Shown piece by piece: positions 19,083 through 63,042 of a stretch of DNA of 64,000 nt. The notes below the pieces were generated by a model, which worked only from the letters and a program-made list of their open reading frames with translations, ran no database searches and was not told where the DNA came from. The translations under genes were made by a program, and so were the position numbers. The stretch covers positions 186,001-250,000 of IMG/VR virus record IMGVR_UViG_3300048121_001678, one strand, 5' to 3'. The stretch's first letter is position 1; each line of letters begins with the position of its first letter.

Positions 19083-20552
19083 ATGTCAATTTACAAGTCA
19101 TATTTTAAACGTAACGATACGTTAATTTTTAACTCATATACAAACACAGGTCAAAATCCTGTTGTTGAATTATTTTTTGGTCGAGTAGATAATTTAAATA
19201 CACCAAAAGGTTACTCACGTTTTATATTTGATATAGACTTAGAAGAATTACAAACTAAACTTTCTAACGGTACAATTTCTACAGGATGTACTCCGTCCAT
19301 GACACATACCTTAAGAATGACTAACACGTCTTCTTTTGATAAAGAATTATTAAATTCAACTTGGTCTAATGGTCGAAGAAGAGCAACATCATTCGACTTA
19401 ATATTATTTAGAATACCTAAAGTTTCAGGTTCCACTGGTGATTCCCAAACATGGGATGAGGGTGTAGGTCAAGATTATTACAACACAAAAGACGCACTTG
19501 AAGGCAATAAATCGTTTTCAGATAGACCAGTAAATTGGTACCAAAGAAATACTGTTAAAAATTGGTCAGTAAATGGATTATATGATAATTCAAATACACA
19601 AACAGGTTCAACTATTGGTTTAAATTATTCTGCACTAACTATTGTTGATAGACAACACTTTGAATTTGGTGATGAGGATATTGAGTTTGATATGACTAAT
19701 GAGATTAATGACGTTTTATCCGGTGCAACTACAGGAGTTACAGGGTGGGGAGTTGCATTTGTTCCTGAAGTAGAAAACATAACAGGTATGACTGAGAATT
19801 ATTCTGTTGGGTTTTTCTCTCGTCACACTCAGACCTTTTATGACCCATTCTTAGAGACAAACTATGATGACTTAATACAGGATGATAGATATACATTTTA
19901 TGAAGGTAAAAGTAATAAACTTTATCTTTACGCCTATGCAAATGGTAACCCAATTATTTTAGACAATAATCCTGAAGTGGATATTCTTGATGAAAGTGAT
20001 AATATAATTCAAACATTGACCGCTTGTAGTAGGTCTAATGGTGTTTATGAGGTAACAGTATCTGCAATAACGTCCTCAAATACCCCATGTATGTATTATG
20101 ATAATTGGAGAGAATTGGCATATAATGGTGATACTATTACACCGATAGAGAATGAATTCGTGTTACTTAAAAATGTGGATTATTTTACAATAGGTACTAG
20201 AACTGAAGAACCATCAATTTATGGTTTTGATTTTAATGGTATTCTACAAAATGAAAAAATTCTTAATACAGATATTAGAAAAGTTAATGTGACACTTAAA
20301 AAGGCGTACACCTCTAAGGAAGTTCTAAAACATGTTGACTGTTACTATAGAATATATGTCAAAGAAGGTAACACCGAAGTTCAGGTTCAAGATTGGACAC
20401 AAATTAATAGGACGGCTGACGGGTTTTACTTCGTATTCGACACAACTGATAAGATACCAAATGAATATTTTATAGATATCAAAGTGAACACTGACAGAGA
20501 AGTTAATACTTATAAAAGAGAACTACAATTCCAAATCGTAAACAAAAAATGA
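19083..20552 (+). CDS. probable virion structural protein
   Basis: TATTTAT at 19062-19068; beta-rich, T/N/S-rich composition. Confidence 0.55.
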   Translation: MSIYKSYFKRNDTLIFNSYTNTGQNPVVELFFGRVDNLNTPKGYSRFIFDIDLEELQTKLSNGTISTGCTPSMTHTLRMTNTSSFDKELLNSTWSNGRRRATSFDLILFRIPKVSGSTGDSQTWDEGVGQDYYNTKDALEGNKSFSDRPVNWYQRNTVKNWSVNGLYDNSNTQTGSTIGLNYSALTIVDRQHFEFGDEDIEFDMTNEINDVLSGATTGVTGWGVAFVPEVENITGMTENYSVGFFSRHTQTFYDPFLETNYDDLIQDDRYTFYEGKSNKLYLYAYANGNPIILDNNPEVDILDESDNIIQTLTACSRSNGVYEVTVSAITSSNTPCMYYDNWRELAYNGDTITPIENEFVLLKNVDYFTIGTRTEEPSIYGFDFNGILQNEKILNTDIRKVNVTLKKAYTSKEVLKHVDCYYRIYVKEGNTEVQVQDWTQINRTADGFYFVFDTTDKIPNEYFIDIKVNTDREVNTYKRELQFQIVNKK

Positions 20553-20800
20553 GAAAGATAAGGATAACTGAGGAACAACTTGAACAAATTGTTAAACGAG
20601 TAATAGACGAAAAGAAGAAGTCTAAAAAGAAAAAGAAAAAGAAGAAAGACACTACCCTATGTTCACGTGGTAAAAACGCGGCAAAGGCGAAATATGATGT
20701 TTATCCTTCAGCATATGCTAATGGATATGCCGTTCAAGTATGTAAAGGTAAGATGCCAGGATTGGACGGTAAAAAAAGATGTTCAGGAAAGTATTGTTAA
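20549..20800 (+). CDS. small basic protein (PSAYANG motif, DUF5872-like) with ITEEQL leader
   Basis: AKAKYDVYPSAYANGYAVQVCKG; poly-Lys tract. Confidence 0.65.
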   Translation: MRKIRITEEQLEQIVKRVIDEKKKSKKKKKKKKDTTLCSRGKNAAKAKYDVYPSAYANGYAVQVCKGKMPGLDGKKRCSGKYC

Positions 20801-20816
20801 CTTAAAAAATAAATAC

Positions 20817-20824
20817 TATATTTG
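20817..20824 (+). promoter_or_regulatory. Bacteroidota -7 promoter element TATATTTG
   Basis: TAnnTTTG consensus upstream of a small ORF. Confidence 0.6.
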
Positions 20825-20844
20825 TACTATAAAATTTTAAAATA

Positions 20845-21021
20845 GTGTCATACTCAACAACAACATATCAATTAAAGAAAGGTGATGAAGTCTTAATGGA
20901 GGTAAATGCCAGCTCAGTAGAACGAGCTATGGATTACATTTATTACGAAATGCCTGAGACATATAGTAAAGAATATGTTGTAACACCAAAACCATTAAGT
21001 GTTACCCCATCCTTAAAGTAG
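20845..21021 (+). CDS. small hypothetical protein (58 aa, not in ORF track)
   Basis: GTG-SYSTTTYQLKKGDEVLMEVNASSVERAMDYIYYEMPE...SLK* fills the intergenic gap behind a promoter motif. Confidence 0.55.
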   Translation: MSYSTTTYQLKKGDEVLMEVNASSVERAMDYIYYEMPETYSKEYVVTPKPLSVTPSLK

Positions 21022-21543
21022 AGAATGGATTACCCATTCGTAACCCTTTATACCCCCATAAGATAGATAAGTCATATTTTCTTTTTCATCTTTAGGGTTC
21101 CGACTCTCTGTAATATAAGACTTATCACAAAAAGATTTAATTTTTTCTAATATTTCTCTTGACACATACTGATTCTCCAAAAGTGTCGTGGCGATTCTCA
21201 TATCCACACCTGACTTTTTAATTCTATATAAGTTCTTCTTAACTGATTCTCTGACCACTTTTGGTACCCTAAATTTATTAAAACCCTCATCAACAGTAAT
21301 TTTAAGGTCACCAGTACCTTTAATTACTCTGTGATATACCATCTTAGGGATAATGTATGTTTGTCCCTCTTGCAAGACCTGAGGTAACTCCTCGTCCATC
21401 TGCAACATCCAACCGTCAGATGATTCCACAAATACCTTACGGTCACTTGTGTCTCTATGCCATATTAATTCTTCAGAATCCACATTTTCTGTAAATACTC
21501 TTCTAAATTTATGATTACTAATATTTTTCTGTTTGTATATCAT
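21013..21543 (-). CDS. hypothetical protein with cupin-like N-terminal domain
   Basis: ELIWHRD...YIIPKMVYHRVIKG; TAATG-coupled start. Confidence 0.6.
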   Translation of the reverse strand: MIYKQKNISNHKFRRVFTENVDSEELIWHRDTSDRKVFVESSDGWMLQMDEELPQVLQEGQTYIIPKMVYHRVIKGTGDLKITVDEGFNKFRVPKVVRESVKKNLYRIKKSGVDMRIATTLLENQYVSREILEKIKSFCDKSYITESRNPKDEKENMTYLSYGGIKGYEWVIHSLL

Positions 21544-23183
21544 TACCAAAATCTTCCAGGTACATTTTTACCAAAATCTTTATGTGCTCTACACGCCCAA
21601 TAACCAGCTTTAGTTTTGTCTTTTTTCTTTGCACATTGGTGTCTGGCGGCAAATGACTTACGAGCACCTGGGTCATTCCATTTAGCGGTCATAACAGGAG
21701 AACCATAACTAACCTTTTTAACTTTACCCGTCTTAGGGTTTTTAACGTATACATACCACTTCTTAGAACCACCACTCTTAGGTTTACCTAATTCTACTTT
21801 CTTACCCTTATATTCTGCCTCATTAATCATTGGGAAATCCAAAGGTAGTCTCTCACCTTCGTATATAAAGAACTTACCCAAATCGCTATCCAACAACTCG
21901 TTATCTAATTCATTCTTATAAAGTCCTTTTTCTCTCAACTTTCTTGCTTCATTAATAACATCAAAGTATTTTGGTGAACCGGTCCTGAAAATATTATCAC
22001 TCAAAGGTATGTTATTATCAATATGGTATTTAACATCTTCAGACATTGTTTCAACAGCATTAGTATATGAACGTAATAAAGTCTCAATTAACTTTACCTC
22101 ATCATCTGTCTTTTCAGATGGAATAACAACATCATCAAAATTTTGAAGTTCTTTTGGTGCCAATGGTGGGTCTAATAAGAACCTTTTATTCACCCAATCC
22201 CTTAACTCATTTTCAACAAAAAATTCAGGTACTGGTTCATCATCAGGTCTATCAGATGCTATGTCAGAAATATGGTAAGCAAATTTTAACTTGTTACTCT
22301 CATCCATTAACTTCATTAACCCATCACTAATAAAGAAAATTTTACTAAGTGGGTCAACACCTCCCAAATCACCTTCAGCGATATTAAAAATACTCATTAT
22401 GGTCTTTGACCACCATGATTTATATGTTGGAGTTTCTTTTAATGTTGGTTTTAAAATTTTATTAAATGCTCTCATTCCCGAACCAACCATACCTGCAATT
22501 ACTATTTGAGGTATAAACCACGGTAATAAACGTATAAACGCTTTAAACCCACCTTCACCAATATGTTTGGCTAATCTTTTATTTCTGGCGGCAGACACAA
22601 TACTCTTTAATTGTCCAAAAGTAATTGGACCTTGAGCACTACAGAATTTTTTGGAATCACAAATACTTTTAATTACTTTACTAGAAGGGTTAACCTCTTT
22701 AGTGTCATCTTCAGTGATTTTAGGTGTATTATCATTACCACACTTGTGACACATATATAAATCATCACCACCATCTTCTATCTTCCAATTCCAACCACAA
22801 TTATCACATAAAACACTATCATTCACTATCGATTCTAATATCATATATGTTAATTTATCAATAGATTCTTTTTTATAGTTTTTAACTTTGATTCTAGTTG
22901 GTTTTTGTCCTTTACCCGATTGAGTATCTTTTTTTTCTTTTTCTCTTTTTCTACGACATGCAGAATCTTTTTCTTTTTGTGACATCTTTCCTGCCACACC
23001 GGCACCTCTACATACTGGGTATCCACCCTTATCCGAGTCTTTTCTTCCACAAGGAGGGTGACCTCCACCTTTCTTTTTCTTACAAATATTAACCCACGGA
23101 CCTTTAGGTTGTGATGAACCTTTCTTTTTCTTTTTCTTTCCGAACCAAACCGCTAAATCTTCACTTAGAATATATTTACTCAT
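21543..23183 (-). CDS. modular basic/Cys-rich late protein (Zn ribbon, DUF6321-like C-terminus)
   Basis: CDNC...CHKC; YVYVKNPKTGKVKKVSYG...ARKSFAARHQC...AGYWACR. Confidence 0.7.
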   Translation of the reverse strand: MSKYILSEDLAVWFGKKKKKKGSSQPKGPWVNICKKKKGGGHPPCGRKDSDKGGYPVCRGAGVAGKMSQKEKDSACRRKREKEKKDTQSGKGQKPTRIKVKNYKKESIDKLTYMILESIVNDSVLCDNCGWNWKIEDGGDDLYMCHKCGNDNTPKITEDDTKEVNPSSKVIKSICDSKKFCSAQGPITFGQLKSIVSAARNKRLAKHIGEGGFKAFIRLLPWFIPQIVIAGMVGSGMRAFNKILKPTLKETPTYKSWWSKTIMSIFNIAEGDLGGVDPLSKIFFISDGLMKLMDESNKLKFAYHISDIASDRPDDEPVPEFFVENELRDWVNKRFLLDPPLAPKELQNFDDVVIPSEKTDDEVKLIETLLRSYTNAVETMSEDVKYHIDNNIPLSDNIFRTGSPKYFDVINEARKLREKGLYKNELDNELLDSDLGKFFIYEGERLPLDFPMINEAEYKGKKVELGKPKSGGSKKWYVYVKNPKTGKVKKVSYGSPVMTAKWNDPGARKSFAARHQCAKKKDKTKAGYWACRAHKDFGKNVPGRFW

Positions 23184-23930: not shown

Positions 23931-25661
23931 TTATCTTAAAGAGTTCATATCGAACGTTCTAACACCATCAACTGTAATAACACCATAGAAACGGTTATTA
24001 ACCATTTTCTTAGCGTATCTAGTCATGATACCCTTGATTGGTGTAAAGTTGAATGGGTTATACATAGTTGGTGTCAACTGTAATGGTACATATGGTGCGT
24101 AAACGTACCCTGTATCCAATAAAGAAGAACCTTTATGTCCCATCAATACAGTGTTAGGTGGGAAGTAAGGGTCACGGTAAACTTGATATCTACCTGATAA
24201 CGTACCTACTCTCTCAATACCCATGTTGTATTGGTCTTGGTCTGGTGCCGCATTTGATACGTGGAAGTATTCCAAGTCATCAAAGATTGCTGAAATTTCA
24301 GAAGAAACTACAATCCAGTTAGCACCACCTCTAAGAGTTGATTTGTGAATTTGAGCCGAGATTTGGTTAATTGCAGTAATCAACGTTTGGTTCCAGTCTT
24401 TTTGGTTATAGTTAACTGAACCATTAGATACTCTCTTCCATCCGTTGTAATCCCAACGTAATGACCAAGCTGCACCTTTTCTCAAGTCTCTTAAGATTTC
24501 ACGGTCAATCTCCGCTGCCACTTGCTCAGATAATAAAGCTGTTAATTCAGCTTCAGCATCGATGTTGTGGAACGCAGAAACGTCTTGTGCTAGTTCTGGA
24601 GACCATTGTGCTCTTAATTTTCTTTCTGTTACAGAAACAGTAACTGCTTCAAGGTCGAAAGAAACTTCACCAATTGCATCTTCAAATTCTAACGTTTTGT
24701 AGATTCTGTATGATGCGTCGAATTCAGGTGACGCTGCGTAAGTTGTACCTGAATAACCATCTAAAGAAGATGTACCAATACCAGCTACTACTGATGTATC
24801 TACAGATAAGTAGATAATACCTTCAGCATCACAGATATTGTCATATTTTCCACCAGGGAAGTTAGTTGATGCTTCAGCACCGTACTGAACAATACCTTTA
24901 CCATACTTCTGTGTTACCACATTGAAGTTGAAGTAATTAGCACCTGAATAAACTTCTAATGAAGCCAAGAATTCTTCAGTGTCCATTGCATTACCATCAG
25001 GACCGATTAGTTTACCTGCTCCGTCTCCTGAGAAACCTGACAACGCAACAATTACTGCTCTTGTTTCACCTGTGTAATCAGTTGATGTAGCCTCTACTAA
25101 AGTACTACCATCCCACTTATAGTTTACTAATGCTTTAGTAATTCCACTATACTGTCCTTTTGAATAATCAAATAGTCCAGCTGGGTCAGAATTTGGTGTT
25201 TCTCCTTCATAGAATTGGTCGTACAAGTTCTTTTGACCTGCAGTGTAACCTGTGTCTGTTGAAGAAGGACCTCCTGGTGCTCCGTAAGGTTTATAGTGTT
25301 CGCCATTGATTTGGTTAGCGTTCGCTTCTTGAATTTTAGGTACGAAGTAGAACAATTTACCGATTGGTAAGTTCATTGCTTGTACTGATACAATATCGTT
25401 AGCTAGTAATTTCGAGAATACTCTTCTAACGATAGGAAAGACTACAGTTTCAAATGAACCTGAGTCAGAAGCGTTTGCTGCTTCGTTAATTAAGTGAGAC
25501 GCTTGGTTTTCGTATAATTGTGCTACGTTTTCTCTCAAGTGACCTTTCAAGCCATCTAAGAAACCTAACTTGTCCCATTTGTTGATTGTGTCTTCTTTGA
25601 TAACTTTTAGGTGTTTTAACCCAATGTTACCTACAAGACCTGATTCTAATAATGCTCCCAT
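23931..25661 (-). CDS. major capsid protein (T4 gp23-like)
   Basis: VRRVF..L.ANDIVSVQAM, RKLRAQWSPELAQD, AEIDREI, YAPYVPL, GIMTRYA. Confidence 0.95.
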   Translation of the reverse strand: MGALLESGLVGNIGLKHLKVIKEDTINKWDKLGFLDGLKGHLRENVAQLYENQASHLINEAANASDSGSFETVVFPIVRRVFSKLLANDIVSVQAMNLPIGKLFYFVPKIQEANANQINGEHYKPYGAPGGPSSTDTGYTAGQKNLYDQFYEGETPNSDPAGLFDYSKGQYSGITKALVNYKWDGSTLVEATSTDYTGETRAVIVALSGFSGDGAGKLIGPDGNAMDTEEFLASLEVYSGANYFNFNVVTQKYGKGIVQYGAEASTNFPGGKYDNICDAEGIIYLSVDTSVVAGIGTSSLDGYSGTTYAASPEFDASYRIYKTLEFEDAIGEVSFDLEAVTVSVTERKLRAQWSPELAQDVSAFHNIDAEAELTALLSEQVAAEIDREILRDLRKGAAWSLRWDYNGWKRVSNGSVNYNQKDWNQTLITAINQISAQIHKSTLRGGANWIVVSSEISAIFDDLEYFHVSNAAPDQDQYNMGIERVGTLSGRYQVYRDPYFPPNTVLMGHKGSSLLDTGYVYAPYVPLQLTPTMYNPFNFTPIKGIMTRYAKKMVNNRFYGVITVDGVRTFDMNSLR

Positions 25662-25690: not shown

Positions 25691-27067
25691 TTATTTAATT
25701 ATTTTTGACATCAAATCCTTCATTCTCATGAACTGTGGATTCTCATATGTCTTAGACTCTATAAGATTTGAAGATGAACCTTTAACAGGTGTCTTAGATA
25801 CTTTTTCAGACATAGATTCTGAAATTGTATTTGCTGACTTGCCATCGAATTCTTCTTTCAAAGTTTTATATAGTCCTTTTGATTCTTTCAATGTTTCTAC
25901 CGAATCGAATCTTCTGAGGATATTGATTTTTTCTTGCTTAGTGGTAGTGTTTTCTGTAAACAAACGTGTAGCGTAAGCCAAGTTAGAATTGAATACTGCA
26001 ACCTCATTCAACTTCTCTTTAAAGATGTTAAGTGCCTTACGGTACTCTTCATTCTTTTCTCTAAGTTGTTGAATCTCTTTCTTTGTAGACTCGTTATAAC
26101 GAGCTCTATTAGGGATTGAGTGTGGTTTTGGTAAACCTTTAGATTTGTCAGAAGATGCTTTCTGTCCAGCAGCGTGACTTCTCACCATACCTTCAGTAGC
26201 TTCACCTTCTTCCATGTCATCTTCTTCTCTAACTTCAAAATCAGCATCGTCTCTTCTTGCTTTCATAGAATCTAAATCCTTGTCAGCCATTTTACCATGC
26301 TTCATTGCCAATCTTTCGTCTTCACGGTCATCATAACCCTGACCTTCAGCCATTTCCTCTTCTTTATACCCTTCTTCCATATCGTCTTCTTCAGATACTT
26401 CGAGTTCGTAAACAACTTCGTCCATTTCTTCTTCCATGTCACTTTCGTACATTTCTTCTTCCATATCACCTTCAGTCATTTCTTCCTCTTTCTCTTCTGA
26501 TTCCATTTGGATTTTATATTCAACGTCAGCCTCATCATCTTTAAGTGTAACTTCATCACCATCCTGAGAAACGATAATTCCATCTTCTTCACCCATAGCT
26601 TTGAAAACCCTTAAGATTTCGTCGTCTGATGCTCCTGTTAAATCAAGAGGTAAAAGAATTTCCTCTTCACCATCCACTTCCATTTCATCACCAGGTAAGT
26701 CCATATCTAACATATCTTCTACGTCATCCATGTCCATCTCCTCGTCATCCATTTCCATGTCTAATTCAGAATCTTCATCAGAATCCATGTCCATTTCTAT
26801 GTCCATTTCATCTTCTACTTCGTCTTCAATGTCGAGTTCCATTTCTTGTTCAGCCATTTCTGACTCTTTTTCCATTTCTGAACCTTCTTCCATTTCGACT
26901 GCTTCAACCTTCTCTTCCTCAGAGAGTGATTCTTTTACTAATTCACTGATTTCTTCCTTCATAGTAGAAGCAAGTATTCCTTTTGCGTTTTCTGTTACGG
27001 CTTCCTCCAAATTTTTCATTTGTAGTAGTGCCTCTTCAACTAATGATTTTTTAGTTTCGTTTGCCAT
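25691..27067 (-). CDS. prohead scaffold/core protein (highly acidic)
   Basis: Lies between protease and capsid; D/E/M-rich with C-terminal coiled coil; ATG at 27067. Confidence 0.7.
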   Translation of the reverse strand: MANETKKSLVEEALLQMKNLEEAVTENAKGILASTMKEEISELVKESLSEEEKVEAVEMEEGSEMEKESEMAEQEMELDIEDEVEDEMDIEMDMDSDEDSELDMEMDDEEMDMDDVEDMLDMDLPGDEMEVDGEEEILLPLDLTGASDDEILRVFKAMGEEDGIIVSQDGDEVTLKDDEADVEYKIQMESEEKEEEMTEGDMEEEMYESDMEEEMDEVVYELEVSEEDDMEEGYKEEEMAEGQGYDDREDERLAMKHGKMADKDLDSMKARRDDADFEVREEDDMEEGEATEGMVRSHAAGQKASSDKSKGLPKPHSIPNRARYNESTKKEIQQLREKNEEYRKALNIFKEKLNEVAVFNSNLAYATRLFTENTTTKQEKINILRRFDSVETLKESKGLYKTLKEEFDGKSANTISESMSEKVSKTPVKGSSSNLIESKTYENPQFMRMKDLMSKIIK

Positions 27068-27432: not shown

Positions 27433-28152
27433 TTAATTATCTAAATAATGAGATAATCTTTTCATTAAGTCAATAGATGCACCCATTCCCCCGTCTAATC
27501 TCGCTTCAGGTTCAGGTCTTTTTTCTTCTTCTAAGTTTTCTTCGTACTTACCTTTATCGTCTTTATTAAGGAATAAGTAAGCACCAGGTGTAGATGGTGA
27601 CGACACCAAATCAAAACATATAAGTTCAAAGTCCTCTTGAACTTCATTTCTTTCACCTTTCTTAGCTAATGAACCGACACCACGTGAAGATACCCCCATA
27701 GTGACACCCTGTCTCATTAAGTTAGCTGCTTGGTCACCAGGACACGACACAACACCTGTTTGATGAAACCCTGGGGATGTGAGTAATTTAATCTTACCCA
27801 TTAATGTATTACCTTCCCACCACATTTCTGTAATTAGGTGTGATACACGGTCCAAATCTATTAATGAAGACTCGGGGTGATTAAGTTCAGATATTGATAA
27901 CCCTTTTTTAATTGCTTCATTATATCTTTCAGCTTCTCTACGTAAAATCTTTTCTGGATAAACACGACCGTTTCTATTTGGTGTGTCGAATTTTTGTAAT
28001 ACCGCATAAAACTCAAATGGTTTAGAGTGGTCTAACTGACCATACGATTCTTTGATTACATCGGCATTACGACTATCATTGGGATTCACATACCCTGCGT
28101 CCCATTCAATCAATATTCCTTTACCTATATCTTGTGGTCCTAAAACTCTCAT
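27433..28152 (-). CDS. prohead maturation protease (T4 gp21-like)
   Basis: NRNGRVYP, ELNHP, VSHLI, GVSSRGVGS, DLVSSPSTPGAY. Confidence 0.92.
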   Translation of the reverse strand: MRVLGPQDIGKGILIEWDAGYVNPNDSRNADVIKESYGQLDHSKPFEFYAVLQKFDTPNRNGRVYPEKILRREAERYNEAIKKGLSISELNHPESSLIDLDRVSHLITEMWWEGNTLMGKIKLLTSPGFHQTGVVSCPGDQAANLMRQGVTMGVSSRGVGSLAKKGERNEVQEDFELICFDLVSSPSTPGAYLFLNKDDKGKYEENLEEEKRPEPEARLDGGMGASIDLMKRLSHYLDN

Positions 28153-28190
28153 ATCATTTAATCTTTATTATAAATACTTAAAAATGGGGA

Positions 28191-28589
28191 TTATTCTATA
28201 ATGACATCATATTCACTTATCACTACTCCAATATATTTGGAATATTTGGTATTCATTACTTCAGCAACTCTGTTATTAATAACAAGTCCTAATGATAAAT
28301 CATCCCCCGAATAAACGTCTTTGATTGCCCAAGTCGATGCGAAACCAGTCACGTCTTGTTCACCATCGTAAGTATATAAAATCTTATCAATCATCACTCT
28401 GGCAGATATATCATTATCCTCCATATCACCTTCTAACATTACATGACTAAAAGTCACTACAGTAAAATCCTCGTTTACCGTGAAATCAGACGGGTCAATA
28501 ATATTGTTAAGGTCATCAATGGCGGTATTACCCTCACTGATGACCTTTCTTAATTTTTGTAGTTGTGATTCTGTAATTTTAATTTTCAC
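28191..28589 (-). CDS. hypothetical late protein with KIKITESQL leader
   Basis: GTG start; TATTTAT on the coding strand at 28607-28613. Confidence 0.65.
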   Translation of the reverse strand: MKIKITESQLQKLRKVISEGNTAIDDLNNIIDPSDFTVNEDFTVVTFSHVMLEGDMEDNDISARVMIDKILYTYDGEQDVTGFASTWAIKDVYSGDDLSLGLVINNRVAEVMNTKYSKYIGVVISEYDVIIE

Positions 28590-30121: not shown

Positions 30122-31996
30122 TTATTTAAGTAAGTTGTTTAATTTTTCTTCCATCTCACCTAATGAATCTCTACCTTTTGATAGGTCAATAGTCTCATCT
30201 TGACCGAACAATGTCGAATCTTCTAAGATTAAATCTAAGTCTTTATTTTTAACAAATGTCTCAGGTGCTAATTCGGGTTCACTACCAGTACCTACTTCAC
30301 CAGCGGGTTCACCACCTAAATCGCCACCTAAATCGCCACCTAAATCGCCACCGAAGTCACTACCCCCACCGAAGTCACCTCCACCACCAAAGTCGTCTCC
30401 TCCTTCAGTATCAGATTCACCTTCAGGTTTAGCATCTTTCTGTCCATATAGTTTGTCAAGGTTATCAAAGATACCTGTATTGACAATAACTTCTTGAGTT
30501 TTTTCTAACTCACCTGCGACCGCCCTTTCGATACGTTGTTGTTGTAGGTCAAGTTTGATTTCCTCATCAGAGAACCCAAGAATATGTTTCTTAGCCCATG
30601 ATGATGAAACAGGAAGGATACCATTACCTGGGTCAGTAGTTGCATCTCTATATAACTGAATCTTCTGTTGCCATTGTTCCACCTTCAACAAGTCCGCTTG
30701 TGACGATGGATTAGTTAAACCTAATGTGAAGTTTTGTAATTCATCTTCAAATCCTAAAATATATAAATGAATTATTGCTATCTTATTTAACTCTTGTACC
30801 ATAGACCTTTGTACTCTATTAATAGTTCGAGCGAAACGAATATCTTGTAGAGCCAAGTTCTTACCTTCACCTGTGACCTCCTCAAAACCTAAGAATGCCT
30901 TTGGTACTCTTAATGCTGTGAGTAATTTCTTTTGAATATACTCTATATCCGCAATTTCTGATAGGTTTGTAGCACCTGGTAAGGTATCTATCGGATTTGG
31001 AGAGTTAGGGTCTCTAACAGGTATAAAATAGTCTTGGTCTACGGCCATTTGGTTCATACGTAGGTCGACATTACCTGTTTGAGGGTCAGCAACTTGGTCA
31101 CGTTTGAACTTATTGGCAACTCTTTGTACATACGGTTCGACATCTTTGTCATCCATATTACCAACAAATACTTTAAACACCCTTCTTTCAGGTGCCCTAG
31201 ATGTTCTATATATTAACATAGCATCTTCAGAGAGAATAAGTTGTTTCCATATTCTTCTGGCTTTTTCCAACATAGAAGTCCCATAAGGAAGTTTACGGTC
31301 ATCACCCAATAATCTAAAGTGGGCAATTTCCCACGTATTGAATTCCATATCCTTAGCCTTCCATTTGAATTTTAACGCATCTTCGTCAGCATCTCCTGTT
31401 GGTTGTTGAATACCATATTGACCAGGTGAGGATTTCATTCCTCTTTCCAATCTTTCGATTTCAATGTTAGGTAATTGTTGTCCACCCACAATACCTTTTT
31501 CAGGGTCCAATTTCAAGTATACAAAGTTATCACCGTACTTAGCGGTGTTTCTTGTCCACATCGGTAAGTTAGTGTCTATATCTAATCTATTATTAAATAA
31601 ATCTGTTAGTACCGATTTAATTCTTTTACTCTCGGAAAAAACTTGTAATATGTAACCGTCTTCGTTAGCTGTTGTTGATTCCTCAGCGTATATATCAAGA
31701 GCCGCAGAAATTTCAGGTGTGAACTCCATACTCTCATAATCGTAAAACGCTGCCAGTCTTGTTGGTTCATAATATACCGCCTGAGTATATAAGTTATTTT
31801 CAACTTTTTGCCATTGTTGACCTAAGTATAGTGTTTGTTGTGCTTCAAGTTTTTCTCTATCATACTCCTCCTTATCACGTGTTTTTAATAATTCTTTCTT
31901 ATCAAAATTGTAAACAGGTGGCTGTTGGTCCAATGTTGAATCGGGACCAAATACTTTGGTTAATCTCTGCCAAACAGTAAAGTTATTTTCTGCCAT
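30122..31996 (-). CDS. portal protein (T4 gp20-like)
   Basis: EDAMLIYRTSRAPERRVF, DYFIP, IDTLPG, DIEYIQKKL..ALRVP. Confidence 0.93.
   Translation of the reverse strand: MAENNFTVWQRLTKVFGPDSTLDQQPPVYNFDKKELLKTRDKEEYDREKLEAQQTLYLGQQWQKVENNLYTQAVYYEPTRLAAFYDYESMEFTPEISAALDIYAEESTTANEDGYILQVFSESKRIKSVLTDLFNNRLDIDTNLPMWTRNTAKYGDNFVYLKLDPEKGIVGGQQLPNIEIERLERGMKSSPGQYGIQQPTGDADEDALKFKWKAKDMEFNTWEIAHFRLLGDDRKLPYGTSMLEKARRIWKQLILSEDAMLIYRTSRAPERRVFKVFVGNMDDKDVEPYVQRVANKFKRDQVADPQTGNVDLRMNQMAVDQDYFIPVRDPNSPNPIDTLPGATNLSEIADIEYIQKKLLTALRVPKAFLGFEEVTGEGKNLALQDIRFARTINRVQRSMVQELNKIAIIHLYILGFEDELQNFTLGLTNPSSQADLLKVEQWQQKIQLYRDATTDPGNGILPVSSSWAKKHILGFSDEEIKLDLQQQRIERAVAGELEKTQEVIVNTGIFDNLDKLYGQKDAKPEGESDTEGGDDFGGGGDFGGGSDFGGDLGGDLGGDLGGEPAGEVGTGSEPELAPETFVKNKDLDLILEDSTLFGQDETIDLSKGRDSLGEMEEKLNNLLK
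30312..30347. repeat. 12-bp tandem repeat x3 (GGDL) in the portal C-terminus
   Basis: CCACCTAAATCG x3 followed by degenerate GGDF copies. Confidence 0.85.
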
Positions 31997-45127: not shown

Positions 45128-45132
45128 AAAAA

Positions 45133-45437: not shown

Positions 45438-46598
45438 CTATTTCCCTAATTTGTAATTACCCTGATTAGTTTTTTTGGTTGCTCTTCCACCTCCACTTGC
45501 CTTTCCGTAATTAACACCATTTATGTGACCATCCAAACCTCTACCTATTGGTAAATAAGTTTTTGGTTTAACTTGACTTATAAATGATTCAGACTTTTCA
45601 GGGTAATTCTCATCCAAATATATTTTAATACGTTTTTTATATTCATCTACAAGATAGTTAACAATATCATTATTAAATTTTTTATATATATCTTGATAAT
45701 AGTTTTCATTATGTCTTTTTGATTGTAAATCTGTATTTTTTAGTTTTGGTAATTTAGACAAATATGATTGAATAGGTTGAGTATCAATATTACCTAATTT
45801 ATTTGTATCATAATCTTTGTCTGCAAAATTTTTGTCTAAAGATTTAATCAAATTAACAATAATATCTGATATTTGTTTACTATTTTTACCTATGTATTTT
45901 TTGTGCAAATCATCCTTACTCTTAAAACTAGGGTAGTTAGATTTAGAATTAGTAATTATAAAAGAAGCGATATATCTGGCAATGCCGTTAAATGTTATTT
46001 GAGTATTGTTAATTTTAGACGGGTTCCAACTAACCATTCTACTTTCTCTTTTTTCACTAGACATACTAATAACCACCCTGTTTGGCATTTTTACTGTCGT
46101 ATCTGTTTTCATTGCTCTTGCCAGTGCTAGCAATCCATTTTGACAACCAATTATTCTTGTGACTCTATAGAAGATTTTATCACCGTCTTTAATATTATCA
46201 TCTTTATAAAATATGTCAGCATTAATACTTCCAGATTTATTTAGTTTGTAAATTTTACTATCACCCACACGTTTACCTTTTGAGTTTACTGGTGTAACAT
46301 AAAATTGAATAAAATCACCTAATTTAGCATCAGAAGGAGTTGATAATTCAGTAAATAAAGATAAATCTTTTGTTCCCACAAATGTTTTTCTTGCATTTGC
46401 CCATCCTCTCAATTCCCAAAAATTTTTGTAATTACTTTCATTGGCTTTTAATCCGTATTGTGTTAGTACCTTTGGATTAACTATTCTTTCAGGACTAGTA
46501 CTACCTTTAATAGTTTCAAACCCACTTTGTTCATTTAAAATATTTCTCACAATTTTCTGAATATCAGATTCAGTTAAACGTATAATTTTCTTTGCCAT
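45438..46598 (-). CDS. hypothetical basic late protein with IIRLTESDI leader
   Basis: 386-aa ORF; TATTTAT at 46616-46622. Confidence 0.7.
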   Translation of the reverse strand: MAKKIIRLTESDIQKIVRNILNEQSGFETIKGSTSPERIVNPKVLTQYGLKANESNYKNFWELRGWANARKTFVGTKDLSLFTELSTPSDAKLGDFIQFYVTPVNSKGKRVGDSKIYKLNKSGSINADIFYKDDNIKDGDKIFYRVTRIIGCQNGLLALARAMKTDTTVKMPNRVVISMSSEKRESRMVSWNPSKINNTQITFNGIARYIASFIITNSKSNYPSFKSKDDLHKKYIGKNSKQISDIIVNLIKSLDKNFADKDYDTNKLGNIDTQPIQSYLSKLPKLKNTDLQSKRHNENYYQDIYKKFNNDIVNYLVDEYKKRIKIYLDENYPEKSESFISQVKPKTYLPIGRGLDGHINGVNYGKASGGGRATKKTNQGNYKLGK

Positions 46599-46607: not shown

Positions 46608-46664
46608 CTTTTACTATAAATACTTGACACTTTGGATTATTGATAAATTATACGTATATTTGAA
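46608..46664. promoter_or_regulatory. bidirectional late/early promoter cassette, copy 2
   Basis: CTTTTACTATAAATACTTGA-nnn-TTTGGAT-N17-TATATTTGAA shared with 45133-45189. Confidence 0.75.
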
Positions 46665-47305: not shown

Positions 47306-48373
47306 TTAATCAAATGCTGGACAAAGTGTTTGACTTGGTCTACGTCGTTTAGATTTGTTTTTGGATTTTTTAATCCATGTATATAATGGTATTTTAATAG
47401 ATATACCTTTAGTTCTTCTCTGGAATGTAACTTTATATAGTTTGGTTGTCAGTGTTTCTTCACCCCCGTCTTTCCCTGGTGATGGAGGTTTATTTAGAAC
47501 AACCTGAATATCAACATTTAAATATTTATAAGGTTCATATTTAGACTTATCAGAGCCTTTTTTCCATTCAGGTCCTGATGTTCCATCACCATTTTGACCT
47601 TTATAGTTTTGAGTGATTACCGTATTTGAATCAGTTATAACACCTAAGGAGTTTAATTGAGATTCTATATATTTTAATGCACTATCATTCCTTAATTTAG
47701 ATAACTCCTTAAACGTATATGTTTTACCGTCAGGAGATTGAGTATTAGGTATTCTCGATGCCGAAGTATCAACATTTAAATTTTTTAAGTACATTTTAGG
47801 TTTACCCTCTAAGCTCTTCATTGATTCTAATTGAGTTTTAATTGGGTCAATAACATCTTTTTTAAATTGCTCTTTAAAATATGGTGTAGTTTCATAGTAA
47901 TTATCGACAAAGAAATCTGAAGAAGGTGAATTATTCGCTGGAAAAACTACTGGTAACGAAGGATACACTTTAGGTTCTCCAGGTACTTTTTCAGTTCTTT
48001 CACCCGCATTACTACAGTACACTCTATTCCATTTATTTTCCGGATAAGTTTCGTTGAATGACTCAACCGTTGCCACCGCTAAATCTATTTGATTTTTCTT
48101 AATTTCTTCCCACTTAGTTCGACTTGTTTTTGTCATCAGAGAAACCATTACATTCGCCTCAGGTCCGTTAACAAACTCTTCCCATTGTTCTTCTGAAAGT
48201 TCTGGTTGTACATTACCTTGTTTTAATGTTTTTTTATCTTTAGTTTTGGATTTAATAATTTGAACACGCTTAGTTCCCACACGTCTCAATTGTTCATTAT
48301 ACTCTTGTTCTTCAAGTACCTTTCTAACCATATTCTCCAAATCAGATTCAGATATTTTTACTACTTTCCTCAT
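47306..48373 (-). CDS. hypothetical late protein with VKISESDL leader, possibly OmpA-C-like domain
   Basis: ATG at 48373; VDTSASRIPN...LSKLRNDSALKYI. Confidence 0.6.
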   Translation of the reverse strand: MRKVVKISESDLENMVRKVLEEQEYNEQLRRVGTKRVQIIKSKTKDKKTLKQGNVQPELSEEQWEEFVNGPEANVMVSLMTKTSRTKWEEIKKNQIDLAVATVESFNETYPENKWNRVYCSNAGERTEKVPGEPKVYPSLPVVFPANNSPSSDFFVDNYYETTPYFKEQFKKDVIDPIKTQLESMKSLEGKPKMYLKNLNVDTSASRIPNTQSPDGKTYTFKELSKLRNDSALKYIESQLNSLGVITDSNTVITQNYKGQNGDGTSGPEWKKGSDKSKYEPYKYLNVDIQVVLNKPPSPGKDGGEETLTTKLYKVTFQRRTKGISIKIPLYTWIKKSKNKSKRRRPSQTLCPAFD

Positions 48374-48401
48374 AATGCTACGTTTTATTAATGATAAATA
48401 G

Positions 48402-48458: not shown

Positions 48459-48462
48459 TTAT

Positions 48463-48852: not shown

Positions 48853-48859
48853 AAGCTAA

Positions 48860-48894
48860 GGTCCAATAGAGTTTATCTATTGGACTTTTTTTTT
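48860..48894 (+). terminator. terminator after tmRNA
   Basis: GTCCAATAGA-GTTTA-TCTATTGGAC followed by a T run. Confidence 0.8.
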
Positions 48895-54811: not shown

Positions 54812-55981
54812 CTATTGTTCTTTTGATGTTATTTTTCCTTTTTCCAAAGTTACACTATAATCCTGTGGTCCTCTAACTTGGGCATTTTTACCATCCTGAC
54901 TTATGTAAATTTTAAACTCATTATTAAATGTAGGTTCATCAATAGGATACATATTTATCAGATGTTCTCTCACATTTGATTGTGTCAATTCACCAATTTC
55001 TCCTGTTGCGTTTGAAAACATATCTTTAATCCATGCAATATCACCCCAATTATTGAACCTTGCCAATGTTGAATACCATAATAACGCACCCAGAGAAGGT
55101 CCAAGACTAAATCCACTAATAACGGTGAGTAGTTTTTTCCACATGGGTAGTTTTGACCACCATGATGGATTGATTTCATTAACTCTTTTAAGTTCGGTCA
55201 ATATATCTGGGTCAATTCTTCTAGAAGAAGAAATTGCGTCTGACATTAATTTATTATATTCAGTATCTGAAATATCTTTTAGGAATGAACCTTTTTTTCT
55301 CGCATTTTTGATGAATTCTTTGAACGCTTTTTCATTTCTTGCAACCATTTCTTTTGTTGTTTTAGAAACAGCATCAGTAGGTATATTATCAACAACACTT
55401 GCACTCTTCAATAGGTCATCGACCGCATTATCTAAATTAGAAATAACGTTTTTATTTATAAAGTCACTATATTTTGAATCAAATTCAGACTTGAAGTCCC
55501 TAACTAATTTTGACTTAATTTCATCAGCACCTTCTAAGTATGGTAATTCATCTAATTTATCTGAATAATATTTTATAATCTTATTACGTTGGTCCATAGT
55601 GATTTGACCCATGCTATCAACTTTTGCAAATATTTTTGAACCAATCTCATCGAAATTAGAACCAAAAAACTTACCTGATTTCATAAACTTAACTAAGTCA
55701 TCCACATTATCAATTGTTGATTTTGATAATATTTCTAATACATCGTCAGAAAGGTTATCAATTCCATCTGTATCAATTCTTCTGATGACATCATCTATTT
55801 GATTATCTGTTAAGTTGAATAACTTAGTTAATGGGTCCAACAAATCATCTGATGTTTTTAGTACTTTCTTTACTAAAGGTTTTGGTAACGGTATTGGTTG
55901 TTCAACTAATAATTTACTCGATAAACCCATAATTTCATGGATTCGATTAATATCTTCATTAATTATTTTTTTATTTTTCAT
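54812..55981 (-). CDS. hypothetical late protein with C-terminal hydrophobic segment
   Basis: IINEDINRIHEIMG leader; LLTVISGFSLGPSLGALLW. Confidence 0.7.
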   Translation of the reverse strand: MKNKKIINEDINRIHEIMGLSSKLLVEQPIPLPKPLVKKVLKTSDDLLDPLTKLFNLTDNQIDDVIRRIDTDGIDNLSDDVLEILSKSTIDNVDDLVKFMKSGKFFGSNFDEIGSKIFAKVDSMGQITMDQRNKIIKYYSDKLDELPYLEGADEIKSKLVRDFKSEFDSKYSDFINKNVISNLDNAVDDLLKSASVVDNIPTDAVSKTTKEMVARNEKAFKEFIKNARKKGSFLKDISDTEYNKLMSDAISSSRRIDPDILTELKRVNEINPSWWSKLPMWKKLLTVISGFSLGPSLGALLWYSTLARFNNWGDIAWIKDMFSNATGEIGELTQSNVREHLINMYPIDEPTFNNEFKIYISQDGKNAQVRGPQDYSVTLEKGKITSKEQ

Positions 55982-56028
55982 ATAATTTCTTTAATTACTA
56001 ATAATAAATAGTTTTATTTATTATAAAT

Positions 56029-57270
56029 TTATAAGTTTGCTAGTTCACTATCCATATTACTTAATACTTTATTAATATATTCAACTTTTTCTTCGTCCGT
56101 GGTTTCAATCACCTTTCCAATCGAAATTTGTACACTTTCCTTAATTTCTGTTGATTCATTAACCATTTGAGATAATAAATCTTTTTGAAACTTTTCTTTT
56201 TCTTTTTCAGATAGTTTAACGTATTCTTCAGGTAACTCAACTCTTCTGTAATCCAATCCTTTAATTTCGACACCTAAAATTTTACCAATTTGCATAAAAG
56301 TGAGGAGTCCACCTCCTAACGCAGCTACTCTCCAAGTTGCTCTCCATGGGAGTAGACCAACTTTAGTAAAATATAATAACGCACCTATTAATTTCTTACC
56401 CGTATATTTTGACAAAGATTTTGAAATTAAACTACTTAGTTTCGAATATGCTTGGACATTTTTACCTATCCAATCAGCATTCTTTTCAAGTTCCATACTA
56501 AGCTTTCTTTCCATTGGTGATAAATCTAAACCCTTTGATACTTTATTTAAAAAGGTTTTAAGTGCACCAGATGTGAACTTTTTTACAAAAGGAATTTTAT
56601 TCAATAACATACCACCAGGTATAACTGCAAACGCAGCACCAATACCTGCCGATTCATAATCCTTCTCTTTAACATATAATGCGATATCCGCAGCTTCTAA
56701 AACACCGGCAATAGCAAGACCACCGATTCCACCTGTTGCCACAGTAACGATAAGTGCACCTATAGGTAATACCCAATGCCAAAAATCTTCAGGTAATGGA
56801 GGTGATGTTTGACGCTCTTCCCAATCTTCTAAATCTGATTTATAAACCTTCATTAATAGACCCTTACCTTTAATACCTTTACAAGATGTCCTATATTGGG
56901 AACAACTACATATTTTATTATCCTTACAAAGTCTTTTTAATCGTGGAGATGTGTACGTTACAAAGTAATCTAATTTATTCATCATCACCTTCTTGTCATA
57001 TGATGACATATTTGATGAGTATACAATGTCTTGGTGAGATGGAGGACTAGGTTTATTTTTACCTGTGTAGTTTAACATTAATCCAGGTGGTATTGACTTT
57101 CCATCAGGCATCAAACCTAAATACTGAGGGTCAACTCTAGTGTTATCTGACTGCATAGTCCTATCAGGAATATTAAACTGCTGTTCCTGAATATTCTCAT
57201 TAAGGGTTTTAGACGAATCGTAATTCATCTTTAATAATATATCTTTTAATATTTGTTCATTATCTACCAT
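56029..57270 (-). CDS. hypothetical late membrane-inserting protein
   Basis: G/A-rich hydrophobic hairpin WVLPIGALIVTVATGGIGGLAIAG...AGIGAAFAVIPGG. Confidence 0.65.
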   Translation of the reverse strand: MVDNEQILKDILLKMNYDSSKTLNENIQEQQFNIPDRTMQSDNTRVDPQYLGLMPDGKSIPPGLMLNYTGKNKPSPPSHQDIVYSSNMSSYDKKVMMNKLDYFVTYTSPRLKRLCKDNKICSCSQYRTSCKGIKGKGLLMKVYKSDLEDWEERQTSPPLPEDFWHWVLPIGALIVTVATGGIGGLAIAGVLEAADIALYVKEKDYESAGIGAAFAVIPGGMLLNKIPFVKKFTSGALKTFLNKVSKGLDLSPMERKLSMELEKNADWIGKNVQAYSKLSSLISKSLSKYTGKKLIGALLYFTKVGLLPWRATWRVAALGGGLLTFMQIGKILGVEIKGLDYRRVELPEEYVKLSEKEKEKFQKDLLSQMVNESTEIKESVQISIGKVIETTDEEKVEYINKVLSNMDSELANL

Positions 57271-57557
57271 AATGGGTTTCCTTTGCCTCTATTTATTCCT
57301 GAGTCCCATTTAGACGTACCGTCAATTGGATTGGCTTTACCTCTTGTTAATCCTGTTTCCCATGTTGTCATTGATGGTCCTGATGGTGCTGGTTCTCCAT
57401 CATCTTGCTCATCAATTTCACCTTCAGTTTCATCATCAGGATAACAATCACATCCATCGTCATAACCTTCAGGACCTTTATACATTGGACTATTAGGTTC
57501 TTCATCGATACCCATGACTTCCTTAATACGTGAAATATCTTCTTTTAATAACCCCAT
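57264..57557 (-). CDS. small late protein with W..G..RGK.NP repeat
   Basis: WETGLTRGKANPI and WDSGINRGKGNPL; LLKEDISRIKEVMG leader. Confidence 0.7.
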   Translation of the reverse strand: MGLLKEDISRIKEVMGIDEEPNSPMYKGPEGYDDGCDCYPDDETEGEIDEQDDGEPAPSGPSMTTWETGLTRGKANPIDGTSKWDSGINRGKGNPLW

Positions 57558-57617
57558 TAGGAAACATTTCTATATAAATAGTTAGTTTTATTAAAAAATA
57601 GTTTGTATATTCGTTTT

Positions 57618-60372: not shown

Positions 60373-60406
60373 AAAAAACCCCTCGATTGAGGGGTTTTCT
60401 TTTTTT
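60373..60406. terminator. bidirectional terminator
   Basis: AAAAAACCCCTC-GATT-GAGGGGTTTT. Confidence 0.85.
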
Positions 60407-60942
60407 TAGTTAAATTTATTAAACCGATTAAAGTTCTCTAAGATTGTATCTCTTTCGGTTTTGAATGCTTCGTGGAGGTCCTCATCGATTTCCTCATACA
60501 TTCCACATTGTTCTGAACATTCACCTTCTCTCATTTCTGAACCACATTGTTCACACATTTCTTTTTCGTCTAACTTGTGGTCGTGACCTTCACACTCACA
60601 ATCTTCAACAGGACTATCACATGAAGGACAAGTTTCACCTTCACCCATAACCATCTCACCATCCTCAGGACCGTCAGATACAAAGTCATAAGCCGGTTCA
60701 ACATTAGAAACGTCCATATCAGGAGCATCAATAACTGCTTGTTCCTGTAGGTTGTTATCGTACACCTTAACTTCACCAGTATTAGTAATCTGAAGACCGT
60801 TTTTATCCTGTGCCAAATCCTCAACCGTCAACGGTGTTTGATTTGATGGAACATTCCCAGTGGCGTAACCATCATAGAAACTTCTATGTGTATTGAGGAT
60901 AGATGCTCTTTCCTCGTCTGATATCATTGAATAACCTCTCAT
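60406..60942 (-). CDS. acidic late protein with CxxC modules
   Basis: ISDEERASIL leader; CPSC...CEC and CEQCG...EGECSEQCG. Confidence 0.7.
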   Translation of the reverse strand: MRGYSMISDEERASILNTHRSFYDGYATGNVPSNQTPLTVEDLAQDKNGLQITNTGEVKVYDNNLQEQAVIDAPDMDVSNVEPAYDFVSDGPEDGEMVMGEGETCPSCDSPVEDCECEGHDHKLDEKEMCEQCGSEMREGECSEQCGMYEEIDEDLHEAFKTERDTILENFNRFNKFN

Positions 60943-61286: not shown

Positions 61287-61328
61287 AACATAACCGTTAT
61301 ATTTGTTTAACATTAAAAAATAAAATAT

Positions 61329-61715
61329 ATGCCATACATAAATCCATATGAGTTACCAACACAATACAAAGAACACAAAGAACTCGGACGATTGATTCGT
61401 AAACAAAGATTCAATGTGACTGAGTATGATAATGCTACTAATTTGGATTTTCGTATAACATATATCAAAATGTCTGATTACTACAGAGACATAGAAGTGA
61501 ATGTAAAGGTTTCAGGAACTCTATATCAATGGGGATACTGGGGACGACAGACAAATTCAGGAGGTAGACGCATTACTGGAATGGTAAATCCACGTAGTCG
61601 TAATAGCGACATCCGTTCTGCAATCCAAAAAGAAATTCGTGACTTTTTTAAGTTATTTGGGGTTGAGAAATATCGTGTTAATATAAAGAAAGTTACAGTA
61701 GCAGAGTCTATTTAA
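61329..61715 (+). CDS. hypothetical protein
   Basis: TTTG(61274)-N20-TATATTTG(61298) upstream. Confidence 0.7.
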   Translation: MPYINPYELPTQYKEHKELGRLIRKQRFNVTEYDNATNLDFRITYIKMSDYYRDIEVNVKVSGTLYQWGYWGRQTNSGGRRITGMVNPRSRNSDIRSAIQKEIRDFFKLFGVEKYRVNIKKVTVAESI

Positions 61716-61716
61716 T

Positions 61717-62307
61717 CTACTTCATCATAATGAAGGCTCGAAGAGCTTGTTTGGCTAATAACTTAACCTCACGGTTCATGTTTTCCAAACTTGGCTCTTT
61801 ACCCTTTCGTTCTAAGGATTCGATAGATAGACGAATCATTGCATGTTTGGCGTCATCCGCAGCATCATATAACTCCACATACTTATCCTCATCATAATTT
61901 TCATATTGATTAAACTGAATATAACGTCTAAGATAATCTGAACCTGAATAAATAAAGTGGGTAGATTCCAACATATTCATTACACCTGACATTCTTAATT
62001 TCTCGAAGAAGTCATACAAGATTTTGTTCTCACGACCCAATACATCTGAAACCGCTTGCCATTCAGTCCAATGGTGATTACCACCTTCATTTAGTCTTTC
62101 ACCCTCATCTAACAACCATAAATCCTCAGCAGATACAATTGAAAGGTTGCGACCATTTTCCCAATCAACAGATATTAATAGGTCATCTTTTTCAAATGGG
62201 TCTTCCTGAACTCTGGTGACAACACCTTTAGTACCTGGTGTCATACCTTGTTCGTCTTTCATATAGACCAACACTATTTTATCACCTTCTTTAACTTTAG
62301 GATTCAT
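61717..62307 (-). CDS. DUF4314-like plus DUF5049-like fusion
   Basis: GDKIVLVYM.D...PGTKGVV...V.WENG..L; LRMSGVMNM. Confidence 0.55.
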   Translation of the reverse strand: MNPKVKEGDKIVLVYMKDEQGMTPGTKGVVTRVQEDPFEKDDLLISVDWENGRNLSIVSAEDLWLLDEGERLNEGGNHHWTEWQAVSDVLGRENKILYDFFEKLRMSGVMNMLESTHFIYSGSDYLRRYIQFNQYENYDEDKYVELYDAADDAKHAMIRLSIESLERKGKEPSLENMNREVKLLAKQALRAFIMMK

Positions 62308-62367
62308 AATAATTTATTGTTTTAGTATAAATACTATTAATTATATATTTATTCTAAAAGAGTTTAC

Positions 62368-63042
62368 ATGCAATACATAATAACAGAAGAACAACATCAA
62401 TTAATCCTTACAGAAGGTTTTAAAGATGCTGTAGAAAATCGTTTAAAAAATGCGTACAACTTTACTAAAGATATCATAGCTAAAACTAAAGAACAATTTG
62501 GTAATAGTTTTAGATTTGCACTTACATATGGTGCCGGTATCGGAGCATTGGCACCCGCAATTGATGAATACTTAAGAGGTTCATTTAGTGGATTAGACGA
62601 CTCCCAAATTGCAAGTCTTATAATGTCAGCAATCTCTATAGTGTTTTTCAATACTAAGGATTATTTGGACATATATAAAAAAATGAAAAAAGATGGTCTT
62701 ATAGATGAATTAGGGTCAGCAGTATCATTCACTGAAAAATTAAAGTCTCGCGTATCAAAAATTTTAGACGTTTTAGGTATCGCCACTTATCAAGCATTGG
62801 ATGTCGTTTCATTTTCGTTCTTATTACCTATTTTACCAGCAATTATTAAAATGTTAAGTGACACAGATTTAGATATGGTGGCACTTAAAGGTTTACTTAA
62901 TTCTTCGTTTATTACTGTAAGTGCAATAACCCTTCAAAAGATTATCGGGAAATTAAGCGAAAAAATTTCACCCAAAAACTCTTCTGATGATGTAAGTGAA
63001 CCTGAGGGTGAATTCCAATCTCCTGAGTCAGATATTGTTTAA
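62368..63042 (+). CDS. late membrane protein with IITEEQ leader
   Basis: TATTTAT at 62346-62352; several hydrophobic helices. Confidence 0.65.
   Translation: MQYIITEEQHQLILTEGFKDAVENRLKNAYNFTKDIIAKTKEQFGNSFRFALTYGAGIGALAPAIDEYLRGSFSGLDDSQIASLIMSAISIVFFNTKDYLDIYKKMKKDGLIDELGSAVSFTEKLKSRVSKILDVLGIATYQALDVVSFSFLLPILPAIIKMLSDTDLDMVALKGLLNSSFITVSAITLQKIIGKLSEKISPKNSSDDVSEPEGEFQSPESDIV

Follow-up and report, generated by a model that had tools for sequence, protein, structure and literature searches.

The stretch of DNA considered here (hereafter the window) covers 64,000 nucleotides, bases 186,001-250,000 of the IMG/VR virus record IMGVR_UViG_3300048121_001678 (297,164 bp, 34% G+C, estimated to be 99% complete), and several of its late genes encode otherwise dissimilar proteins that share a short amphipathic leader of one of two classes. 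Judged by its proteins, this uncultured jumbo phage is a distant relative of T4, with direct T4 matches for 11 proteins only, and the minus strand of the window carries a T4-like head module formed by the large terminase, the portal, two small conserved genes, the prohead protease, a scaffold-like protein and the capsid protein (Table 1). Relatives of the capsid protein are encoded by more than 599 IMG/VR contigs, a set of 80 of them being 72-84% identical, and the nearest records in phage collections, among them the isolates Flavobacterium phage immuto and Microcystis phage Mel-JY01, show about 41-45% identity over the aligned parts. A preliminary description of the window had read the leaders as a "load-and-cleave" tag with which the phage packages a set of injected effectors; the following paragraphs describe the leaders, the genes that carry them and how far that reading can be sustained.

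The class-1 leader comprises about 20 residues, with the consensus MKK-I-I-R-LTESDL-x-R-IVKRVI-x-EQ in a profile built from this genome. Searched against the six-frame translation of the genome, this profile identifies ten copies with E values from 1.8e-13 to 3.5e-6, the next match having E = 1, and a second, independent tool recovers the same ten. Eight of the copies are N-terminal, one is internal, at residue 119 of an acidic 339-aa protein (G000 62021-63040; positions so marked are those of the whole genome), and one is found at the C-terminus of a 47-aa protein. When the N-terminal 28-mers of all proteins of at least 70 aa are compared with each other, 13 pairs score at least 45 (ten of them accounted for by class 1), against three pairs for the control formed by residues 41-68. 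The leader DNA of the different copies diverges at synonymous sites, which implies that the peptide itself is conserved; a recent duplication of 5' gene ends was considered and rejected, since the codons differ between copies. A word-index search with the leader region alone retrieved just three near-identical orthologues.

All the leader peptides quoted in the preliminary description are encoded where it had placed them (the protein at 28589 from a GTG start), and the profile scan of the genome and its relatives that it had proposed as a check yields the ten sharply separated copies; in relatives, the orthologues of the protein at 20549-20800 retain the leader. Four of its five class-1 examples, beginning at 20549, 28589, 46598 and 48373, belong to the family, whereas the fifth, at 62368, is not significant by profile. 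The leader had also been presented as an N-terminal feature; this is mostly so, but the internal (residue 119 of 339) and C-terminal copies of this genome, and the many internal, C-terminal and tandem ones found elsewhere, are exceptions to the rule.

The second class that had been claimed (INEDINRIKEIMG) is also real, with three strong copies genome-wide: those at 55981 and 57557 and a third at the C-terminus of the protein encoded at G000 62021-63040. Weaker copies occur at G000 283114, 289620 and 1043, and in a relative. The layout is like that of class 1, with (I/L)(N/K)E ahead of the helix and LxEQ some residues past it. A search for related loci with the 389-aa class-2 protein found none. 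The acidic protein of 339 aa at G000 62021-63040 (minus strand) combines half a class-1 motif at its N-terminus, the full class-1 motif at residue 119 and the class-2 motif at its C-terminus, and might serve as an adaptor or auxiliary scaffold. Another N-terminal motif, the third that recurs, I-(S/T)-(E/D)-(E/S)-E-(K/R)-x-x-I-...-(H/Y), was noticed in TATTTAT-headed genes at window positions 60406-60942 (minus strand) and at G000 288781-289251 and 18455-19258.

Table 1. Leader genes, head genes and a promoter-like element of the window (coordinates within the window).
Coordinates	Strand	Feature	Upstream element or other support
20549..20800	+	Class-1 leader protein, 83 aa: leader at aa 1-21, lysine run, basic Cys-rich domain (phrog_27331)	Co-transcribed behind 19083-20552
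28191..28589	-	Class-1 leader protein of 132 aa with a GTG start; its gene directly precedes that of the protease	TATTTAT 28607-28613
45438..46598	-	Class-1 leader protein, 386 aa, cargo of unknown fold; residues 1-32 used in the complex model	TATTTAT 46616-46622
47306..48373	-	Class-1 leader protein, 355 aa	TATTTAT 48394-48400
54812..55981	-	Class-2 leader protein of 389 aa; a hydrophobic stretch towards its C-terminal end may span the membrane	TATTTAT 56004-56010
57264..57557	-	Class-2 leader protein, 97 aa	TATTTAT 57574-57580
62368..63042	+	Claimed class-1 member, weakly leader-like (MQYIITEEQ...), hydrophobic segments	TATTTAT 62346-62352
19062..19068	+	TATTTAT promoter-like element heading the 19083-20800 operon	Motif
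23931..25661	-	Major capsid protein, gp23-like, 576 aa	phrog_138, gp23 homology
25691..27067	-	Scaffold-like acidic protein, 458 aa from MANETKK	T4-like head module
27433..28152	-	Prohead protease, T4-type, Peptidase_S77, 239 aa	TATTTAT 28170-28176
30122..31996	-	Portal protein (gp20-like)	TATTTAT upstream
32046-33821	-	Large terminase	T4-like head module

An alignment of 33 class-1 copies from this genome and its relatives reads MKK-Φ-Φ-(R/K)-LTE-S-(D/E)-L-x-x-Φ-Φ-(K/R)-(K/R)-Φ-Φ-x-E-(Q), where Φ is a hydrophobic residue; the Glu of LTE is its sole invariant column and the terminal Glu is near-invariant. With LTE at one end and Φ-x-E at the other, the module therefore has a hydrophobic-x-Glu site on each side of an amphipathic helix. 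When the profile made from these 33 copies was searched against 1.84 billion (1.84e9) representative proteins, the module was found in 6,777 protein clusters at E <= 0.001 and in 30 at E <= 1e-10. Among the best 150 matches, which hold 200 copies, the location is N-terminal for 144 copies, internal for 43 and C-terminal for 13. More than one copy, either two or three, is present in 47 of these proteins. The last residues of the motif are [ILV]xE, and a Q comes next in 106 of the 200. Residues resembling MKK often precede the internal copies, as if leader-bearing genes had fused. The ten matches whose clusters were looked up all come from environmental assemblies, the few named ones being hypothetical proteins. 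Where genomic context is visible it is that of a phage: a capsid gene (PF07068, Gp23) is present on one contig, and another has three leader genes in about 14 kb, one of them with a PG_binding_1 domain, and a contig related to it has a fourth.

Searching 50,697 phage records by tblastn with a 26-aa leader gave no match, Pfam and PHROGs found nothing on the leader proteins except phrog_27331 on the Cys-rich domain, a literature search for the motif strings returned unrelated papers only, and the ESM Atlas, queried with leader residues 1-30, was uninformative (a single helix). Classes 1 and 2 are real, widespread and hitherto undescribed modules of late genes in a clade of uncultured T4-like jumbo phages, and class 1, and probably class 2, are portable units of about 20 residues.

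The link with late genes comes from the heptamer TATTTAT, which occurs in sense orientation 19-28 nt before 41 of the 350 predicted starts, compared with 1-7 for control heptamers of similar AT content. Of the ten genes with a strong N-terminal leader of either class, nine are preceded by it at a distance of 23-29 nt and 20549 lies in the operon of 19083, so that all ten belong to TATTTAT-headed units, in agreement with the preliminary description. The companion claim was that genes with host-type promoters lack the leader; none of the window genes behind a TAnnTTTG-like element has one. TAnnTTTG-like promoters also hint at a host among the Bacteroidota. Because the heptamer also heads the portal and protease genes (19-29 nt from their starts), the scaffold and endolysin genes (further off) and many very large genes that look structural by their size, it may reasonably be called a late promoter. 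Judged by this motif alone, the leader genes appear to be expressed late together with the head genes. The promoter link was not replicated in relatives, in which the leader genes near the capsid gene are mostly inside operons, and an extended regular expression for the promoter was too strict to be useful. The endolysin-like protein of the window (51298-52179, minus strand), with peptidoglycan-binding and amidase PHROG matches, stands behind TATTTAT and fits the late-promoter reading. Near-identical cassettes of about 40 nt, made up of promoter and 5' leader (…CAAGTATTTATAGTAAAAG…), precede two unrelated neighbouring genes, 43271-45127 and 45438-46598, at about 45128-45170 and 46599-46640.

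The short forms of the leader that had been listed at 45127, 54804, 23183 and 215 do not stand, as they occur at chance level. An [IL]xE triplet lies within the first 10 residues of 11% of the proteins without TATTTAT and of 29% of the TATTTAT-headed ones (p = 0.0013; about 8% expected), the latter figure counting the true leader genes too. The density of [ILV]xEQ is three times as high in the first 40 residues as elsewhere, and this longer pattern is found in 7 of 63 TATTTAT-headed genes versus 10 of 287 others (p = 0.019).

The enzyme that might process such sites is encoded in the window. The prohead protease matches PF03420 (Peptidase_S77) with 86.5 bits (cut-off 27) and is 32% identical to gp21 of T4, the catalytic His92 and Ser155/156 being invariant; GILIE, close to its N-terminus, is conserved, as is its C-terminal tail, which follows a linker that varies. 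The last 15 residues of this tail (…DLMKKL…) align with the C-terminus of T4 gp21 (…EAMKKAL), their Met is invariant in 23 of 23 sequences, and the tail may be a conserved targeting or autoprocessing element. The capsid protein belongs to phrog_138 (2e-65) and matches gp23 (1.5e-26). Its first 60 residues are nearly invariant among the relatives shown, more so than the remainder, and end in LINE|A (L57-E60|A61), after which a variable stretch begins. This LINE|A is invariant in the same relatives and is aligned exactly with LTE|A of T4 gp23, so the predicted maturation cleavage between E60 and A61 is located where the preliminary description had expected it.

The scaffold-like protein has LIE|S (E437|S438) 21 residues ahead of an invariant C-terminal tail. 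Its two ends hardly vary among relatives; the middle between them, long, hyper-acidic, repetitive and rich in Met, Glu and Asp, differs greatly in length. A post hoc pattern common to the scaffold tail and class 2 matches four proteins of this genome (the scaffold and the three class-2 proteins, with 0.015 expected) and, in relatives, 60 scaffold tails and one other protein.

A possible encounter between protease and leader was modelled with the catalytic domain of the former and residues 1-32 of the 386-aa leader protein. The complex scored 0.61, whereas three controls scored 0.00-0.04; this mark was attained for 58 of the 80 solved complexes and for 2 of the 110 mismatched pairs, counts that are rough, an alignment of our own having been used. 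On the side of the protease, the modelled interface includes H92 and S155-162 and lies at the catalytic cleft.

The proteins that follow the leader are diverse. In relatives, class 1 is N-terminal to the basic Cys-rich domain phrog_27331, and C-terminal or internal to another Cys-rich domain, a leaderless form of which opens the window protein at 21543-23183 (minus strand). These two domains, both very basic and rich in Cys (GPWVNIC... in one; YPSAYANG..VQVCKG in the other, phrog_27331), recombine with class 1 in varying order among relatives, the arrangements being those of window proteins 21543-23183 (minus strand) and 20549-20800 (plus strand) and of L054 5737-6159, L058 4838-5614 and L020 7136-7465. 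Very basic Cys-rich leader proteins adjoin the capsid gene. Residues 169-268 of the class-1 protein at 47306-48373 share 39% identity (E 8e-12) with a segment of a protein that, in a relative, has a class-2 leader; homologous cargo is thus found under class 1 here and under class 2 there, which indicates that the leader classes are interchangeable on related cargo. By eye, this domain contains an OmpA-like peptidoglycan-binding motif, for which Pfam gives no confirmation. Cargo that binds peptidoglycan, or looks as if it did (PG_binding_1 by Pfam, the OmpA-like motif by eye), has no evident signal peptide. As to the proposal that the cargo consists of injected effectors, analogy is all that speaks for it, and it has to be regarded as speculation; Pfam gave just four weak matches on 96 database bearers of at least 100 aa. 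The protein immediately upstream of the protease gene was considered as an analogue of the core proteins gp67 and gp68, a candidacy weakened by its absence from most relatives.

Taken together, these observations are best explained by the loading of accessory proteins into the capsid followed by cleavage, a reading to which we give a probability of roughly 45%. The module would be formed by a short strand and an amphipathic helix placed between two Φ-x-E sites, LTE|S before and [ILV]xE|Q after. The helix would attach late accessory proteins to the assembling prohead, at its core or its inner shell, and the S77 protease, active only inside proheads, would then trim the module at one or both of the flanking sites. 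Given a protease site on either side, the helix would be removable whether it is N-terminal, internal or C-terminal. The load-and-cleave tag of the preliminary description thus retains the support of the head module, the S77 protease, the capsid site, the flanking Φ-x-E sites and the late units, and loses that of a strict N-terminal location, of sequence likeness to the capsid-targeting sequence (CTS) of T4 and of modelled contacts at the expected sites.

Several results weigh against capsid loading with cleavage. The modelled contacts of the leader are residues 26-32, just past the helix, and not the LTE/LNE sites, and an orthologue does not keep E28, which lies among these residues. As a pattern, Φ-x-E carries little information, and amphipathic helices abound. 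Mini-proteins of 55-77 aa contain little beyond two leader copies, a poor fit to a tag that is purely cleaved off. Conservation in orthologues gives the leader only a slight edge (96%, versus 80-86% for the body), and the leader protein at 28191..28589 is accessory, as no relatives but the closest have it. That class 2 resembles the scaffold tail is only suggestive, the pattern having been written after seeing both, and a profile made from scaffold tails alone fails to retrieve the class-2 proteins. With regard to other phages, the leader profiles give nothing significant in 120 kb of T4, and the method that recovers ten of ten copies here did not detect the module in Flavobacterium phage immuto, RM378, Mel-JY01 or the 484-kb LR756508; these four are T4-like by their capsid protein, a prohead protease being annotated only in immuto. 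Finally, a role in lysis or at the envelope would also agree with the hydrophobic segments or peptidoglycan-binding domains of several cargo proteins.

The alternative that survives best, although it is rather unlikely, is that the module is a docking or oligomerisation helix that is never cleaved and that attaches its bearers to another site of the virion (neck, baseplate, tail or outside of the capsid) or assembles complexes of accessory proteins; the case would then resemble that of tail fibres and spikes that are otherwise unrelated but share N-terminal anchors. The late expression, the reuse as a module and the independence of position are what a generic binding helix would display, the two-copy mini-proteins look like bivalent linkers, and one copy belongs to the operon of a 1,060-aa gene whose product has, by eye, a sheath-like N-terminus. 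Three points speak against such a helix: the P1 residue of T4-type cleavage has its counterpart in the invariant LTE Glu and in the near-invariant Glu that ends the module, the model places the leader region in the cleft of the protease, and the cargo is small, often very basic or ORFan, and not fibre-like.

Slightly less probable still is a role inside the infected cell, apart from virions, in which the leaders would associate lysis or exclusion proteins with the membrane or envelope, or would direct them to a phage hub such as the AAA+ protease at 40131-42146. The hydrophobic segments and peptidoglycan-binding domains of several bearers are in line with this, as is the fact that the phage encodes an ATP-dependent protease, but the leader has no hydrophobic, signal-like core, the bearers are linked exclusively to the TATTTAT late units that the head genes also use, a small basic leader protein is conserved near the capsid gene in the relatives where it is found, and the controls of the complex model stay at 0.00-0.04. 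Chance, composition (an AT-rich genome with MKK starts) or recent 5'-end duplication is a most improbable source of the resemblance, for while it accounts for the short forms and for 62368, [IL]xE being common in the first 10-25 residues, it is already refuted for classes 1 and 2 by E values down to 1e-13 with a gap to E = 1, by the 6,777 clusters, by synonymous divergence and by the comparison of N-terminal with internal 28-mers.

A wider version of the capsid-loading proposal would hold that the docking helix is independent of position and excisable, that its classes are interchangeable, that fused genes are processed in the manner of polyproteins, that the two-helix mini-proteins serve as auxiliary core linkers and that the packaged proteome, comprising thousands of ORFan families across an uncultured T4-like jumbo-phage clade, can be read from sequence. 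This version is rather unlikely.

Two other genes of the window deserve mention. A phage-encoded tmRNA gene occupies 48463-48852 on the plus strand (Rfam RF00023, 82.5 bits against a gathering score of 47), and its tag peptide, according to ARAGORN, ends in ...EEVAVA; two small open reading frames in the list, at 48461-48622 and 48660-48866, overlap with this gene and are probably not genuine. The ATP-dependent AAA+ protease at 40131-42146 (plus strand, 671 aa; phrog_4871, E 4e-244) has a TAnnTTTG-like element upstream, not TATTTAT.

If capsid loading is correct, the proteins delivered by the virions of uncultured jumbo phages could be read directly from sequence, and thousands of ORFan families (6,777 clusters with a motif that has neither Pfam nor PHROG annotation) would receive a first function. 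It would also extend the capsid-targeting principle of T4 to a longer, portable, position-independent tag, with a new handle for loading cargo into phage capsids. Should the leader turn out to be a docking helix of another kind, it would still be a protein module, encoded by late genes of phages, that is widespread and has not been described before.

Three groups of known systems can be compared with the leaders. Shells of the HK97 fold are loaded through short terminal peptides, as in the C-terminal tails of HK97 gp4, herpesvirus UL26/UL26.5 and the P22 scaffold, and in the cargo-loading peptides of encapsulins. Here, in a similar manner, both scaffold and protease have conserved C-terminal tails, after LIE|S in the former and after the variable linker in the latter; the point at which the comparison weakens is the class-2 leader, whose likeness to the scaffold tail is only suggestive.

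In the giant phages phiKZ, 201phi2-1 and SPN3US, the propeptides of head and ejection proteins are cut by T4-like proteases at (S/A/G)xE. The resemblance lies in the jumbo phage with many accessory head proteins, in the multiple sites per propeptide and in paralogues with common N-termini, such as SPN3US gp53/gp54 (PMC5694885). Their propeptides, in contrast, are mostly longer than 100 residues and follow no clade-wide consensus helix, and the sites predicted here are of the form [ILV]xE.

The closest parallel is T4, in which the CTS of IPI-III, Alt and gp24 directs proteins into the scaffolding core, after which gp21 removes it at (L/I)xE (PMC3012670; PMC5694885). Both systems combine short N-terminal amphipathic tags on unrelated late proteins (head proteins in T4) and hydrophobic-x-Glu sites with an S77 protease, and the propeptide cleavage sites of their gp23-type capsid proteins align. 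The module described here shows no sequence likeness to the CTS, and it differs in its length of about 22 residues, in its strong consensus and in its additional internal, C-terminal and tandem copies. On the capsid-loading reading, held with the same reserve as above, the leaders would be a longer, position-independent variant of the T4 CTS principle.

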